Sequence record: NC_022096.1
Length of the DNA: 64,000 nt
Strand: one strand, 5' to 3'
Positions 27,794-60,405 of this stretch are shown here, one piece after another. How positions within the stretch are numbered: the stretch's first letter is position 1; the number at the start of each line of letters is the position of its first letter. A program made the translations under genes and the position numbers. The notes below the pieces were generated by a model, which saw only the letters and a list, made by a program, of their open reading frames with translations, was not told where the DNA came from and ran no database searches.

Positions 27794-28246
27794 TCAGTCG
27801 AAGTCTTCTTCGTCTTCTTCGTCTTCTTCCTCGTCGTCGTCTTCTTCTTCCTCGTCGTCCTCGTCCTCGTCCTCGTCGTCGTCCTCGTCGTCGTCATCTT
27901 CCTCGTCGTCGTCTTCTTCTTCCTCGTCGTCTTCCTCGTCGTCCTCGTCCTCGTCGTCTTCTTCCTCGTCGTCCTCGTCGTCGTCCTCGTCTTCTTCTTC
28001 CTCGTCGTCCTCGTCCTCGTCGTCTTCTTCCTCGTCGTCCTCGTCTTCTTCTTCCTCGTCGGACTCATCGTCCTCCTCGGTCACGTCGGGAGCCTGCTCG
28101 GCGACGAGTGCGATGGCCTCGTCGATGGTGTCGGCACCGGCTTCCTTCATCTGTTGCAGCAGCGAGAGCAGCGCGATGGCCAGGCCGGCGGTCAGGTCGA
28201 AGTTGATTTCTTTGGCTTTGGACTTGGTGGATTTCTTCTTGGCCAT
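27794..28246 (-). CDS. hyper-acidic protein
   Basis: 56-aa head followed by a 94-residue tail that is all D/E except one S and one F. Confidence 0.75.
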   Translation of the reverse strand: MAKKKSTKSKAKEINFDLTAGLAIALLSLLQQMKEAGADTIDEAIALVAEQAPDVTEEDDESDEEEEDEDDEEEDDEDEDDEEEEDEDDDEDDEEEDDEDEDDEEDDEEEEDDDEEDDDDEDDDEDEDEDDEEEEDDDEEEDEEDEEDFD

Positions 28247-38065: not shown

Positions 38066-38287
38066 TTATTCCTCGTCCGAATGTTCTGCAATTGTTTGTG
38101 GCGTGATCATGGCCACCTGCACCCAATGAGCGATGACCAGAGTAACGACCAGAGCTGCGCACAGTGCGAGCCTTGGAACCGACGGGTCGGGCGTCTGTTC
38201 AAGCACGCCGAAGATAATCAGTAACGCCATCAGGTACATCATGGCGTAGTAGCGGTGTACGATAAACTTCAGGCTTGGTCGGTTCAT
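38066..38287 (-). CDS. small two-TM membrane protein
   Basis: Two hydrophobic segments. Confidence 0.65.
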   Translation of the reverse strand: MNRPSLKFIVHRYYAMMYLMALLIIFGVLEQTPDPSVPRLALCAALVVTLVIAHWVQVAMITPQTIAEHSDEE

Positions 38288-54152: not shown

Positions 54153-54160
54153 TTCCTGCG

Positions 54161-54197
54161 AAAACCCGAGTAGTGCTCTGTGCCTGCTCGGGTTTTT
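54161..54197 (+). terminator. intrinsic terminator
   Basis: AAAACCCGAGTAG / CTGCTCGGGTTTTT. Confidence 0.8.
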
Positions 54198-54199
54198 CA

Positions 54200-55600
54200 T
54201 TTTGGGCGTCATTGGCGATTTCTGGTACAAGACGCCATTAAGATAGCGCAGACCCAGTGATCTGCGGAAACGTCCTAGAGGATGCGATTCAAGGAAACGC
54301 GCCGCGATGACCCCGTACGCCTGACAAGGCATAACGTAGGTTCGTTTCTTCGCAAAGTGCCCTGCTTTTCCTGTGTCAGTCACACTCGTTCAAACGCCCG
54401 TTTGAAAATATTTTTCGTCGATTGATCACTTTTTGTACAGCATTTTTGTGACCACGGATTTGGTAAAATGGCAGGTCCTACGCAGCGGGGCGCCATCAGG
54501 TTACAACCTTCCGTACGTTTTTCGCAAAGGTGCAAGGTTTGACTACTGATTGCAGTAGCGGACGATTCCGCAAAACACGCATTCTATGCGAAGGACCTAG
54601 TGAAACTTGCGAAGGACCTGCCGTTCTGCGGAAACGCAAAAATCGGAGCACTCGTTTTGACTACTGATTGCAGTAACAGATTCGTGTGGGTAGCATGTGA
54701 CCGAAAAAGGACCCACCTAAAGTCGAGACCTTTTGCACATAGGATTACCACGGGGCGGTCCTACGGCATGGCATTTCCCGTGACCATCGACCTCGCTGGA
54801 GAGCGCGTAGAATCTAGCTTCCAGAGCGGTTGGTGAAAAAATGTCCAACCTGTCCAAAAAATAACCAAAAAGCAGGGAAATCGAAAAAATGGATAGTGTC
54901 AAGTACCACGAAGTTACTTCGCATCTTCTCCTTCCAGTCTCTTCCAGTCAAGCTGACAAGCTCGTCTCGTCCCTCGCCTCCCTCTCGTACAACTTCGTCG
55001 CTCACCAGTGTGGTTAACTCGCATCACAGGATTACTCCAAGCGGAGCGTTAGCGTAGCGCAGGAGAGAATTGAAGAAGGCTTTCGCCGCAGGCGAAACGC
55101 GCAGAGCGCCAGCGATGCGCCTTACGCCTCTGCAATTCCCTGTGCGCAATGGCGACGATTAAAGAGCGCGGATGCTTACTTTGCCTCATTTAGCAGTGAT
55201 GCAACGTAAGCGTCTTCGCTCAAGTATCTGGGTACAAGTCTGCTTCCTTACCTCACGGAGTGAGCAGGTCGCCTGCGAAACGACGTTTTCCGAAATTTTC
55301 TGGATGAACAGGACACACTGGATGGGAGCCTTGGGAGTCTGGGTCGTCGCACATAGACACTTAGGAGTTCGCTGGCGCTCACTCCTTGTGAGCTTCGCTC
55401 ACGGAATTTCTTTAGCCTACGGCAGGAGTCGCTGCGCTCCTCTGGTTCGCTGGCGCTCACGGGTGACGCTCATAGACTACCGGACGTTCAAACGGCGAAG
55501 CGAGCTGGCGCTCAAACGCCAAGAGCATATTCCGCCCCGCCCGCCGCCGGATTCCCGCCGGAAACTGTGAAAATAGTTTGCACGCCACAATAAACGCCGG
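54200..55600. repeat. long non-coding region with several direct-repeat families (origin candidate)
   Basis: 20-mer TTTGACTACTGATTGCAGTA x2; 12-mers TGCGAAGGACCT x2 and TCTGCGGAAACG x2; 16-mer GTTCGCTGGCGCTCAC x2; no credible ORF. Confidence 0.6.
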
Positions 55601-55629
55601 GCGAAAGCCTCGCAATAAGGACATCGAAC

Positions 55630-56777: not shown

Positions 56778-57451
56778 CTGAGCATCAGGTATTGCCTGAG
56801 GAAATCGCCAATAACCAACGGCTGCTGCGCATCCACATTTCGCTGACGTCCGAAGAACTGCGTGAGTATTTTGCCATGCGCTCTGCGTGCCGAGAGCTTC
56901 CAGCAGGATCGGAAGCCCAACGTGCTCTCGTTGGCAATTTCACCCAACGCTTCTCTGATTTCGTGGCTGACTGGAAGACGTTTGGTGTTACGCAGTACCC
57001 GACGCCGCTGCTTCCGTCGCTGCCGTACAACTACTTCGCCACGATCGACCGTGAGCACGCATCTGGTGCCGTGCTCTTTCTGCTAGCGAACCCGTCGCCG
57101 CAGAGTCGCGCAATCTACGCCCATTGGGCGACGTGGAGAGCAATGCTGGCTGCGGTTGGTTTAGGTTCGTTGCATGACGATCTGTGCCAGTGGAGTTCGT
57201 ACTTGCAAGTCATGCGCAAGGTCTGCTCGCAGAAGACGTTCCCGCGTCAAACCCTCTGGGCTGAACTGATTCCGCAACTGGTGATGCGCCGCGACTTGGT
57301 AGACGGCCGCGTAACTGGCGTCGTTGCTTATGTTGCCCGCTGCATCCGAGACTGCCTTGGGTTGGATCGTAATTCCGATCGTCTGATAATCAGCGACACC
57401 GGTCTGGTAGTTGACGGACCTGCCCTTACCATTGAACGGAGACTCCCATGA
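56774..57451 (+). CDS. hypothetical protein
   Basis: Start MTEHQ by ATGA coupling. Confidence 0.7.
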   Translation: MTEHQVLPEEIANNQRLLRIHISLTSEELREYFAMRSACRELPAGSEAQRALVGNFTQRFSDFVADWKTFGVTQYPTPLLPSLPYNYFATIDREHASGAVLFLLANPSPQSRAIYAHWATWRAMLAAVGLGSLHDDLCQWSSYLQVMRKVCSQKTFPRQTLWAELIPQLVMRRDLVDGRVTGVVAYVARCIRDCLGLDRNSDRLIISDTGLVVDGPALTIERRLP

Positions 57452-58098
57452 TGGAAAACTTCCTCACGCACGACGACATCGTAACCTTCTTCTCGGACAT
57501 GGATGTCAGCGTGCAAATCCTGCAGCAACACCAGGGTTCGCAGTACACCGACATCAACGGCCAGCAGGCTGTCGCTGCGTTCGCAGAGTTCAGCGGTCAC
57601 ATTCCTTTCCCGAACACTGACGGTGATCTGCGCGAAGCGGCCGCAGCGCTCAAGCGCAAACTGCGCGAAGCTCGTGGCGACGCCAACACCGTACTGGTTC
57701 GTTCCATGGTCGCCACCTCGGCACCCACAGGCGTGTCCTTGTTCGCACACTGCGCCTTCGTCAAGGCCTTCGTCGAAGTCGATCCGCGCACTGAGCGCGT
57801 TCGTCGTTTGGTTGAGCGCGGCGAGTGCTGCAACGTCGGCGATGTGGCTCACGCTCTGATCCTCGGCTATCGCTGCGCCCGACCTACGTGGGAGAACGAT
57901 GCGTTCATCTACCTGCAGAACGCGAGCGAGTTCAAGGTCAATCGCGCACCTCTGCTCGGTATTTTCCCCGAGGGCACCAACATCAAGTTCGAGGCGCACA
58001 TCGATCAGTACCAAGACGACGGCAGTGTTCGCGTCTGGTCGCCGAGTGTTGCCGACATCCTGGCCACCGACTGGATCATCCTGGCTCACGAAGTGTGA
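57448..58098 (+). CDS. DUF2829 / Tad2-like domain protein with an extra N-terminal domain
   Basis: AL..G.RCARPTWE....IYL..VNRAPLLGIFPEGT.I....HID....DG....WSPSVADILATDW follows the DUF2829 pattern. Confidence 0.75.
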   Translation: MMENFLTHDDIVTFFSDMDVSVQILQQHQGSQYTDINGQQAVAAFAEFSGHIPFPNTDGDLREAAAALKRKLREARGDANTVLVRSMVATSAPTGVSLFAHCAFVKAFVEVDPRTERVRRLVERGECCNVGDVAHALILGYRCARPTWENDAFIYLQNASEFKVNRAPLLGIFPEGTNIKFEAHIDQYQDDGSVRVWSPSVADILATDWIILAHEV

Positions 58099-58227: not shown

Positions 58228-58303
<76 letters not shown>

Positions 58304-58325: not shown

Positions 58326-58799
58326 ATGCCGCAAGTTTCTGCGCCAGAAGGCGATGCGCTACTCGACCTCGCCAACATGCCTGATCCTGCCATCGACGAT
58401 GCGTTCGATCTTCACCTGATCGAGGCGAATGACGGCGTATGTCGTGCGGTCGCGCCGATCTTCAAGTCCCTGCAACTGGCGCTGTCCGATATGAGTTACA
58501 CGGACAACGGTGCGCAGTACAAGGAAGAAACTGGACATCGCGGTGCGCTGACGCTGGAGTTCTTCAACAACGTCGGTGGTCAGCAGTGGATCGACGGTTG
58601 CGACGCGCTCATCGCCGAACTCGATGCCGTTGTATTCCACGTGTACCATGCCAACGGCGAGCTGTACAGCGAACTCCGCTTCTCTGGCTTGACCGAGCCG
58701 GAGTTCACCCGCGAGTTCTCGCACAGCGATCCGACAGTGCAGGTCCTGCAGTACGTCTGGCTGTTTGCCGACGTCAAGGAAACTGTGAAAGAGCAGTAA
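58326..58799 (+). CDS. hypothetical protein
   Basis: 157-aa ORF with GGAG SD. Confidence 0.7.
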   Translation: MPQVSAPEGDALLDLANMPDPAIDDAFDLHLIEANDGVCRAVAPIFKSLQLALSDMSYTDNGAQYKEETGHRGALTLEFFNNVGGQQWIDGCDALIAELDAVVFHVYHANGELYSELRFSGLTEPEFTREFSHSDPTVQVLQYVWLFADVKETVKEQ

Positions 58800-58805
58800 A
58801 GAACA

Positions 58806-59045
58806 TCCGACCGCCGATTGCGTGCTCGTCCCACGTGATCGACGGTTTTGGCAGCGACTCCGCTAAGCTGCCGACCAGATGGGTGTGCGGAAGGGTTCGG
58901 CGGAGGTAGCAACTTCGCCGTCGATTGGCCAGTGCAGCGCGTCCTCAGCGTACTCGTCCTACGCAGTCCTCAGCGCTGTACCGCCGTTAGCGTTTACCAA
59001 GCGCCTGCCGAATGCCTGCTCGTCCCAGGATTGGCTGGCCAAAAG
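58806..59045 (+). ncRNA. candidate ncRNA with three CUCGUCC-loop hairpins
   Basis: Identical loops at 58825-31, 58953-59 and 59019-25 on different stems; G-U pairs favour the plus strand. Confidence 0.65.
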
Positions 59046-59111
59046 ACGCAAAGCCCTGCTCGACTTTCCGGTGGAGTAGTAACCGGCTCGATTACTTGAA
59101 GGAGAACAGGC

Positions 59112-59348
59112 ATGTTCCTTTCGCTTTGCCTTGGGCTTGCTCTGGTGTGCGTTGAGCCGACTGCTCCGCCTACACGACCAGATGTCGTGTACTACCAGAC
59201 AGAGACCCGCATGGTTGCTGTTCGGGAATACACCGAACCAAAAGAAGTCGCCGCACTTCCGGAACAGAGTGGCGGTGCGCCCTATCCACGATCAGCGCCT
59301 AACGACCGCGGTCGTGAAGGCCACCGATGTACCATCGGGGTTGCCTAG
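59112..59348 (+). CDS. small protein with hydrophobic N-terminus
   Basis: GGAG SD; MFLSLCLGLALVC. Confidence 0.5.
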   Translation: MFLSLCLGLALVCVEPTAPPTRPDVVYYQTETRMVAVREYTEPKEVAALPEQSGGAPYPRSAPNDRGREGHRCTIGVA

Positions 59349-59564
59349 CTGTCCGGAGCTTCCGCGATCCCGCCCCAAACCGAAACACCACATCGCTAGG
59401 CTTAACGGCCAACAAAATCGCTGAGAGCGAATGAAGTGCGCGAGAAATCGTAGGCACTAAGAAAGGGCAAGGCGGCACGTTAGAGAACAAGGCAAGAGGC
59501 TGACTCGCTGGATTTAGCGACCAGATGCGCCGGGAAACAAACCTCTGCCGCCTGCCAACCTAAA

Positions 59565-59641
59565 GCGGACTGATGAGTGGTTCAAGTCCACATGGCGAAA
59601 GCCTCGGGTGAAAGGCCCACGAAACTCAAACGAGTATCCGC
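59565..59641 (+). ncRNA. type I hammerhead ribozyme
   Basis: Stem I GCGGA/TCCGC, core CTGATGA, stem II GTGG/CCAC, GAAA, stem III CTC-aaac-GAG, GUA cleavage triplet (predicted cut after 59636). Confidence 0.85.
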
Positions 59642-59916
59642 ATGAACGCCGCTCCTGGATGAGCGGTGGGTTCAAGTACACCGACCCACTAATCGGGTCG
59701 TTTCTCGGAGCTGCTTCTGCTGAGATTTCTGTGCGTAGTGAGAAGCCATAGGAGCCTTCGGATACCTGGTCGGCTCATGCCGATAGCGCTTTTTCATCGG
59801 CGCTATCGTACAGGGTTATGGTGGTCATGTGAAACACAAGCACATGCACGCTGCACTCGTTCCCGCCCGCGAGTTCCACCATGCCTGCGGTGAAAGCCAC
59901 AGGTGCAGCCTATTTA

Positions 59917-60081
59917 TGCCATCACGCTCGGCAACGTGCTGAGAAGAAAGAAACGATAAGGCGAGTCTACATACGCCGATCGGCCGCATAGCAGCCCATT
60001 GTGGCAGCCGCATAGTGCCGATTGCCGTTGCGACCAAGCACTTGGACACAAACGCTTCTTGAGTCGTCGAGCGTGATGGCA
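59917..60081 (+). ncRNA. candidate long-stem structured RNA
   Basis: 14-bp perfect closing stem TGCCATCACGCTCG/CGAGCGTGATGGCA, inner stems GAGAAG/CTTCTT and CGATCGGC/GCCGATTG around a central bubble. Confidence 0.5.
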
Positions 60082-60105
60082 CCCTATTGAACAGAGGTAA
60101 CACGT

Positions 60106-60288
60106 ATGTGTATTTGCCGCCGTGCATGGTTCCTGATTGTCGTCAGCGCATTGTACCTGTTGGGTTGCGTTGTCGCATGGTCCATGGGTTGTCTGAATGT
60201 TTACGTCAACCCGGCACAGCTGGTATACGTTGCCGTTCTCTCTGTTCCGCTGTGGTGCAAGTCAGTAGGACGTTTGCTTCACATGTGA
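60106..60288 (+). CDS. small two-TM membrane protein
   Basis: GAGGT SD; two hydrophobic segments. Confidence 0.6.
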   Translation: MCICRRAWFLIVVSALYLLGCVVAWSMGCLNVYVNPAQLVYVAVLSVPLWCKSVGRLLHM

Positions 60289-60294
60289 GTCTGT

Positions 60295-60388
60295 GACCCA
60301 GTAGCTCAGTTGGTAGAGCGCGTGAACGCCTGCGCCGATAGCGGGAGTAACGTCATAGAGGTCGAGAGTTCAAATCTCTCCTGGGTCT
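60295..60388 (+). ncRNA. tRNA-like RNA with expanded anticodon arm
   Basis: Acceptor GACCCAG/CTGGGTC, D arm GCTC-agttggta-GAGC, T arm GAGAG-ttcaaat-CTCTC; 27-nt insert in place of the 7-nt anticodon loop; no CCA. Confidence 0.75.
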
Positions 60389-60405
60389 GCCTATTTCTGT
60401 AAAGG

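Follow-up and report, generated by a model that had tools for sequence, protein, structure and literature searches.

The window analysed here is a stretch of 64,000 nt from the 258,139 bp genome of the Pseudomonas phage PaBG (Baikalvirus), a jumbo phage; all coordinates are positions in the window, to which 62,000 is added to give the position in the sequence record NC_022096.1. At 58800-59111 on the plus strand lies a structured spacer of ~310-313 nt, which is the 3' UTR of gp317 and the 5' leader of a 78-aa ORF that carries no annotation, and which is non-coding and conserved in four close lineages with 26 compensated pairs. In the PaBG reference record the whole of the region from 58800 to 60294 (1.5 kb) is without annotation, and the RNA is not described in the PaBG genome paper (PMC7412058).

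The upstream gene gp317 (58326-58799, plus strand) encodes a protein of 157 aa in which no known domain was found, its AF2 model is weak (pLDDT 65) and its matches to tube or Hcp-like proteins are faint. The downstream 78-aa ORF (59112-59348, plus strand) is preceded by a Shine-Dalgarno sequence, AAGGAG at 59099-59104, and is missing from the RefSeq annotation; its N-terminus is hydrophobic, its homologues are 94% and 69% identical and it is found in all eight of the lineages examined. A conserved 60-aa ORF that looks membrane-spanning (60106-60288, plus strand) is likewise missing from the RefSeq annotation of PaBG.

The genes and tRNAs around the spacer all lie on the plus strand, in a cluster that carries a tRNA-Thr(UGU) at 58228-58303, the counterpart of which in relatives is tRNA-Thr(CGU), an Ala-like tRNA of 94 nt at 60295-60388 and then tRNAs for Lys, Asp and Lys. 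The spacer is predicted to be co-transcribed with these plus-strand genes and to fold into a chain of hairpins. Two genes 5' of it is gp163 (57448-58098, plus strand), in which a Tad2-like domain of the anti-Thoeris kind is recognised (Pfam E = 2.8e-12), and the neighbourhood as a whole looks like an accessory or anti-defence island. In the related lineage L007 a PD-(D/E)XK gene is inserted between tRNA-Thr and gp317. In the 'tRNA-Ala' (plus strand) ~36 nt replace the 15 central anticodon-arm positions of the tRNA model; the ARAGORN call varies among relatives between Ala(UGC), Ala(CGC) and undetermined, the insert in L007 being much longer, and the RNA is perhaps tRNA-like or else a tRNA with an interruption.

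Further RNA elements lie close by. A type-I hammerhead ribozyme that is missing from the annotation occupies 59565-59641 (plus strand), with cleavage predicted after A59636. Its parts follow in the order CUGAUGA, stem II (GUGG/CCAC) with a 36-nt insert that holds a T-arm-like GGUUCAAGUCC, GAAA and stem III (CUC/GAG), and its stem I, GCGGA/UCCGC in PaBG, is compensated to GCGAA/UUCGC in L004 and to ACGGA/UCCGU in L009. Rfam misses the PaBG hammerhead, a minimal version in L027 and L028 reaches sub-threshold Hammerhead_3 scores, and a hammerhead-core pattern searched against IMG/VR and GTDB genomes returned only PaBG or nothing. The ~750 nt from 59340 to 60090 (plus strand) are non-coding, conserved in four lineages and without an Rfam match, with a mean column identity of 78% over an aligned block that includes the 60-aa ORF, compared with only 37-66% for the adjacent gp317 protein; this block is probably a large structured RNA in which the hammerhead is embedded. 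A second 1.5-kb stretch without annotation (54153-55629, plus strand) is 89% identical to L003, with the last ~800 nt more conserved, and contains two copies of TTGACTACTGATTGCAGTA. At ~54930-55000 there is an unstructured pyrimidine tract with CUCGUCUCGUCCC, CCUCC and CUUCGUCGC, in which the core UCGUC occurs three times.

Three hairpins with a common loop

A preliminary description of this DNA had reported three hairpins with a CTCGTCC loop in the spacer, and all three are indeed present, the loops starting at 58825, 58953 and 59019 of the plus strand. The first, H1 (58810-58846), has 15 stacked positions made up of 12 Watson-Crick pairs, two G-U pairs and one C/A mismatch, closes the loop at 58825-58831 and folds with -17.7 kcal/mol (z = -2.95). 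The second, H2 (58932-58981), has an inner stem GCGUA/UACGC (58948-58964) with the loop at 58953-58959 and an outer stem (58932-58940/58973-58981), separated by an internal loop with GUCCUCA on the 5' side and AGUCCUCA on the 3' side; it folds with -21.1 kcal/mol (z = -4.05). The third, H3 (59007-59036), is the weakest (z = -1.5) and does not appear when the full spacer is folded to minimum energy; its loop at 59019-59025 is closed by a GCCUG/CAGG(A) stem, with CCUG/CAGG at 59015-59029, and an interrupted outer helix extends as far as GCCGAAU/AUUGGC. The copies are spaced 128 and 66 nt apart with unrelated hairpins in between. It had also been claimed that the three stems differ, which is true of their sequences, but they are not unrelated, since all three follow the common pattern GC[G/C]U[G/A]-loop-[C/U]A[C/G]GN, and at two positions both partners of the pair have changed.

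The sequence CTCGTCC is found 26 times in the window against an expectation of 12.2, with much of the excess coming from a cluster of CTC/GTC triplet repeats at 27860-28016. Four copies are clustered there, and these repeats would be read as runs of Asp and Glu if the gene is on the minus strand. The 23 copies outside the spacer hairpins lie mostly in GAC-GAG-type repeats that, judged from their flanks alone, would read acidic codons on the opposite strand. A stem of at least 4 bp encloses only the three spacer copies and, at 38072, one further copy with an A/U-rich stem of 5 bp. All pieces of the PaBG genome were scanned with a covariance model for the aligned 17-nt hairpins, which found only the three spacer copies (26-28.5 bits, the next best match having 14.5 bits); thus the motif is specific to this locus and is not a genome-wide promoter, terminator or operator signal.

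Amongst GenBank phages, blastn and tblastn matched the spacer region to PaBG itself only, searches of IMG/VR by gp317 peptides and by the H2 pattern returned PaBG alone, and the H2 pattern had no match in JGI metagenomes. The syntenic relatives were obtained solely by looking up exact proteins in assemblies of Logan and ENA: L003, L004 and L005 were found by a gp317 homologue of 65% identity, L007 and L008 by the small ORF at 94% identity, L009-L011 by the small ORF at 69% identity, and L023, L024-L026, L027 and L028/L029 by a gp317 profile search.

The preliminary description had proposed that selection acts on the loop, an idea tied to the conservation of the loops in homologues, and the relatives bear it out. 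The core YUCGUC is kept at two or three unpaired sites of the spacer in five metagenome lineages (six with PaBG), nearly all of these sites apical, and it persists despite 8-nt loops, a move into an internal loop and the full turnover of stems. In the four close lineages every loop is CUCGUCC except for H1 of L004 and L009 (CCUCGUCU) and H3 of L004 (UUCGUCG). The stem of H1 is nearly wholly rebuilt in L004 and L009 and again in L024, with the CUCGUC of the loop retained; the inner stem of H2 changes from GCGUA/UACGC to GGCGA/UCGCU in L009 around an unchanged loop, whilst its outer stem covaries and gains U-G pairs among the relatives; and the H3 stem goes from GCCUG/CAGGC to GCGUG/CACGC in L009, a C-G pair becoming G-C. 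In the internal loop of H2, all four close lineages retain GUCCUC on the 3' side, but only PaBG and L004 have the 5' copy. A complementarity of H2 to the sarcin-ricin loop of 23S rRNA, which was considered as a candidate, is absent in L009 and was dropped. Covariation in relatives, proposed earlier as a check, was found as well: pairing is intact in 97% of the stem cells of the 17-nt alignment, four of the five pairs have changed on both sides in a compensatory manner, and none of 500 shuffles reached the observed covariation score.

In the more divergent L023 it is the 5' internal loop of H2 that carries CUCGUCC, the apical loop of this hairpin being AUUCGUCC. The loops of L024 are CCUCGUCA, CCUCGUCU and, in H3, AUUCGU, and this third copy can close as a UUCG tetraloop in which the motif is partly buried. 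The core that is invariant over the lineages is YUCGU(C). The motif is absent in L027, where a gap of 28 nt replaces the spacer, and in L028, where a gap of 264 nt holds other hairpins.

The spacer as a structured RNA

H1, H2 and H3 make up only part of the folded spacer, in which no fewer than three further helices are conserved. A closing helix, P0 (58803-58886, plus strand), pairs ACAUCC at 58803-58808 with GGGUGU at 58881-58886 (RNAalifold columns 7-12 with 88-93) and encloses H1 and a further hairpin, HA, as a three-way junction; it stays paired in all sequences, one pair changing from U-G to U-A. HA (58850-58872) has 6 bp and an 11-nt loop, GACUCCGCUAA, with G-C/A-U exchanges at two of its pairs, and the ACUCCrCUA of its loop is kept in six lineages. 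Next is a conserved G-rich strand, UGGGUGUGCGGAAGGG (58880-58895), the 5' part of which forms P0, followed by HB (58898-58920), an 8-bp hairpin with the heptaloop GUAGCAA. The stems of HB differ among PaBG, L004, L023 and L024, its loop is found as GUAGCAA, GUGGCAA or GCAGCAA, and in L024 it loses the U at loop position 2, thus some of the spacer loops are not anticodon-like.

Just 5' of the ribosome-binding site is H4 (59062-59086, plus strand), GACUUUCCGG-UGGAGUAGUAA-CCGG, which is near-invariant, with a single variable base across the four close lineages and L023 and a loop shortened to UAAAAGUAA in L024 and L028. It is probably a separate module. Its 25-mer, GACTTTCCGGTGGAGTAGTAACCGG, recurs exactly in unrelated AT-rich contigs from metagenomes and IMG/VR (L016-L020), where a Pistol ribozyme follows ~180 nt downstream of it; in the two longer of these contigs it also lies upstream of a RAGATH-1-type hammerhead (50.7 bits, just under the Rfam threshold of 56.3) and of a tRNA. 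Such recurrence suggests a conserved module that belongs to the ribozyme-and-tRNA cassettes of phages; a literature search on the H4 sequence gave chance matches only.

That the element acts at the level of RNA and on the plus strand is favoured by its G-U pairs and by covariation, as the RNAalifold energy is -104 kcal/mol for this strand, where 26 pairs are compensated and the covariation term is -6.1, and -87.2 kcal/mol for the other, where that term is -0.8 and the G-U pairs become A-C mismatches. The same evidence vindicates the preliminary description in setting aside a Csr/Rsm-like reading of the antisense strand. The substitutions in the spacer are without preference for a codon position (12/10/13 and 25/21/27), and its indels break the frame; two overlapping ORFs (58848-59099 and 58879-59079) are spurious on the same grounds. 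Rfam, searched with the whole window at the gathering score and with 58700-60400 at E<=10, found tRNAs only, and neither ARAGORN nor the Rfam tRNA model has a match within 58800-59111, so that a tRNA gene or pseudogene with a cloverleaf of acceptor, D and T arms was rejected. The spacer is a previously undescribed RNA family supported by covariation, and it is very probably a functional structured RNA of the plus strand, the selected feature of which is the repeated unpaired YUCGUC, nearly always apical.

What the repeated loop may be for

YUNR is the signature of a U-turn. The spacer loop opens with YUNR, and with a 5-bp stem and a 7-nt loop the hairpins appear to have the geometry of a tRNA anticodon arm. 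Read in this way the loop is Y32 U33 C34 G35 U36 C37 N38, its positions 1-5 (CUCGU) being positions 32-36 of tRNA-Thr(CGU), with a C at position 37 of all copies where tRNAs have a purine. ARAGORN finds tRNA-Thr(CGU) directly 5' of gp317 in L003, L007 and L024-L026, with an anticodon loop of CUCGUAA or UUCGUAA, and UGU in PaBG; L027 and L028 have neither the motif nor that tRNA-Thr. Positions 32-36 are common to the hairpins and to the tRNA-Thr(CGU) of L003, L007, L024 and E. coli (thrW), and H2 matches the arms of the L003 tRNA-Thr and of thrW at 11 of 17 positions, including 27-29, 31, 32-36 and 41-42. The hairpin stems do not copy the anticodon stems of the phage's own tRNA-Thr. In E. coli the domain-2 loop of the thrS leader, read directly, is UUCGUGU.

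Cleavage of tRNA is a widespread form of antiphage immunity, and the countermeasures described in the literature consulted are replacement tRNAs, which are resistant to cleavage or made in excess. P2-OLD preferentially destroys tRNA-Thr(UGU), and the tRNAs that it cleaves have an invariant A37 (PMC12445682). AriB of the PARIS system cuts the tRNAs for Lys(UUU), Thr(UGU) and Asn(GUU), with Thr(CGU) barely cut, and requires U36-A-A-U39 as well as contacts with the D-loop (PMC12409363). To both of these nucleases phage tRNAs are a countermeasure (PMC12445682, PMC12409363). PaBG and its relatives encode tRNAs for Thr, Lys, Asp and, in L009, Asn, besides the Ala-like tRNA, and these are among the species that Toprim nucleases of the OLD family attack. 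The anticodon arm of the PaBG tRNA-Thr(UGU) (58254-58270, plus strand) is ACUGA-CUUGUAA-UCAGU, and it retains the paired CNG motif at which P2-OLD cuts and the UAAUCA site at which AriB cuts; in the tRNA-Thr(CGU) of L007 and L003, A39 or C39 replaces U39.

The best reading, which is given a probability of roughly 0.3, is that the spacer RNA is a multivalent mimic of the anticodon arm that titrates a reader of the tRNA-Thr loop, with a defence tRNase as its client. The RNA presents the same heptaloop, Y-U-C-G-U-C-N, on three hairpins (two or three in the relatives), and these arms would bind and titrate the protein that reads the anticodon loop of tRNA-Thr. The most likely client would be a host defence nuclease that targets tRNA, since the island of phage tRNAs lies beside a Tad2-like gene and holds the tRNA species that nucleases of the OLD family attack. 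The hairpins have neither the substrate features of P2-OLD (A37 and a paired CNG at 28-30/40-42) nor the U36-A-A-U39 of AriB, and C37, the U30-A40 pair and the lack of UAAU mean that the mimic would be cleaved poorly but might still bind. A precedent for a hairpin that is bound by a tRNA-reading protein is domain 2 of the thrS operator, which binds ThrRS as an anticodon-arm mimic (PMC9976931).

Several points tell against mimicry. The match to tRNA-Thr amounts to 5 nt and the geometry, and any U-turn heptaloop appears anticodon-like; C37 differs from real tRNAs and from G37 of the thrS operator; the tRNA-Thr of PaBG is UGU, not CGU; and a bare hairpin is without the D-loop contacts that AriB needs. 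The co-occurrence of tRNA-Thr and the motif may go back to one evolutionary event and is thus counted once. To our knowledge the known tRNA-Thr nucleases are those of E. coli systems, and we know of none for the Pseudomonas host.

A loop that opens with YUNR is also a classic feature of antisense RNAs that pair quickly, and a live, though less probable, rival is that the spacer is a multivalent base-pairing RNA whose U-turn loops would start loop-loop or loop-single-strand pairing with GGACGA in RNAs of the phage or the host. This was the first of the two options of the preliminary description, the other being a protein sponge. Three identical 7-nt loops on stable stems would suit such a role, and GGACGAG is over-represented in the window, but this excess lies mostly within GAC-GAG-type repeats. 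An intramolecular search of the adjacent 1.5 kb in four lineages found no conserved complementary site for the loop, the best candidate being a GGAUGAG that is kept in two.

It is unlikely that the spacer is, like the thrS operator, a leader bound by the host ThrRS through its CGU loops, which would couple translation of the 78-aa ORF to the charging of tRNA-Thr or would sponge ThrRS. The YUCGU loops match the UUCGUGU of operator domain 2 (PMC9976931), the element is a 5' leader, and ThrRS is dimeric where the element is multivalent. RNAalifold also proposes that a flank of H4 pairs with the Shine-Dalgarno region, but this sequestering helix shows one-sided changes only, and H3, the nearest copy, lies ~85 nt 5' of the start codon rather than beside the Shine-Dalgarno sequence. 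Position 37 is a C, and a benefit to the phage is not evident.

The loops might instead be repeated sites for a phage RNA-binding protein or RNase, serving as operators or processing sites that control the expression or maturation of the transcript, although this too is improbable. The motif is confined to this locus in the PaBG genome, the region is rich in processing elements (tRNAs and the hammerhead, with Pistol in distant loci), and the conserved unstructured tract 3.9 kb upstream holds its three UCGUC cores, yet a candidate RNA-binding protein was not found. The adjacent gp317 was considered as the partner and rejected, since it has no domain match or RNA-binding signature, its model is weak and the gene is also present in L027 and L028, which are without the motif.

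There is little to recommend the hairpins as passive elements, that is H1 as the terminator of gp317 and the others as mRNA-stabilising structures or decayed tRNA fragments whose function does not depend on the loop. A UUUU follows H1 in PaBG and the region of the tRNA cluster contains T-arm-like remnants, but the U-tract is missing in L004 and L009, no tRNA-like fold was detected in the spacer, and a purely structural role would lead one to expect the reverse of a loop that is conserved while its stems vary. As the UUUU is found in PaBG only and the terminator scan does not call H1, this hairpin was rejected as a general intrinsic terminator. An antisense sponge for RsmA/CsrA, the minus strand having five GGA motifs in loops or internal loops (GGACGAG and UGAGGAC) and the Pseudomonas host possessing an Rsm system, can hardly be maintained against the A-C mismatches and low covariation term of that strand, the plus-strand neighbours, the want of a match to RsmY, RsmZ or CsrB and the unconserved 5' copy of GUCCUCA.

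To return to the anticodon-arm mimic, a bolder version of it would make the spacer the first natural RNA decoy against a tRNA-targeting immune nuclease, with three uncleavable arms occupying a tRNase of the OLD, PARIS or E5 type and complementing the adjacent replacement tRNAs. This version is tentative and rather unlikely; a literature search found no description of an RNA decoy of tRNA-directed immunity. If it were true, a multicopy mimic of the anticodon arm alone would counter such immunity in a different way and at lower cost, and it would offer a handle with which to find a Pseudomonas nuclease or another protein that reads the loop. The 1.5-kb stretch of PaBG, with its spacer, hammerhead and ~750-nt RNA, is in addition a compact model for the RNA accessory functions of jumbo phages.

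Comparison with known systems

The preliminary description had likened the hairpins to cuckoo/CcsR and RNAIII, an analogy that is not supported, as the complement of the loop, GGACGAG, is not Shine-Dalgarno-like and Rfam has no match at E<=10. Membership of the class of RNAs with C-rich loops complementary to Shine-Dalgarno sequences (CCUCCUCCC or UCCC) was rejected, as the spacer loop is CUCGUCC, and so was a repeat of the ToxI type, the antitoxin of type III systems, in which copies of ~34-36 nt run head to tail, as the spacer copies are 128 and 66 nt apart. With RsmY, RsmZ and CsrB the spacer has in common that several hairpins carry a single short motif, and also the principle of multivalent titration; their motif is GGA and their client CsrA/RsmA, whereas the spacer has GGA only on the disfavoured strand and is without an Rfam match.

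The thrS operator of E. coli is also a 5'-leader hairpin with a 7-nt loop in which U33-C34-G35-U36 is found, and it too has more than one mimic per RNA (PMC9976931). The spacer copies read Y-U-C-G-U and so have the U33 and the CGU at 34-36 of a thrS-type loop, but position 37 is an invariant C instead of a purine, G37 in the operator. There are three copies in the spacer and two in the operator, the spacer is encoded by a phage and lies upstream of a small ORF rather than of thrS, and the mimic copy nearest to the Shine-Dalgarno sequence, H3, ends ~75 nt before it.

The phage tRNAs that neutralise OLD-family tRNases share with the PaBG locus an island of tRNAs (Thr, Lys and Asn) and, as the target, the anticodon arm of tRNA-Thr (PMC12445682, PMC12409363). 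Those tRNAs are complete and chargeable and replace the cleaved tRNAs of the host, whereas the spacer consists of three bare arms and could act only as a decoy or inhibitor. Isolated arms can be sufficient for recognition, as tRNases of the colicin E5 type accept anticodon-arm minihelices with YGUN as the determinant (PMC1635277), and YGUN is present as C-G-U-C in every spacer loop. In the spacer, however, it lies at positions 34-37 and in tRNA at 33-36, and the E5 substrates are synthetic rather than natural decoys.

Phages are known to use RNA decoys of another kind, the solitary-repeat RNA anti-CRISPRs and pseudo-ToxI, which imitate an RNA ligand of the host and occupy a defence protein. 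These imitate CRISPR or antitoxin repeats, whereas the mimicry proposed for the spacer is of a tRNA anticodon arm, and the spacer would give a new form and a new setting to ideas that are already known, namely mimicry of the anticodon arm, multivalent sponges and phage RNA decoys.
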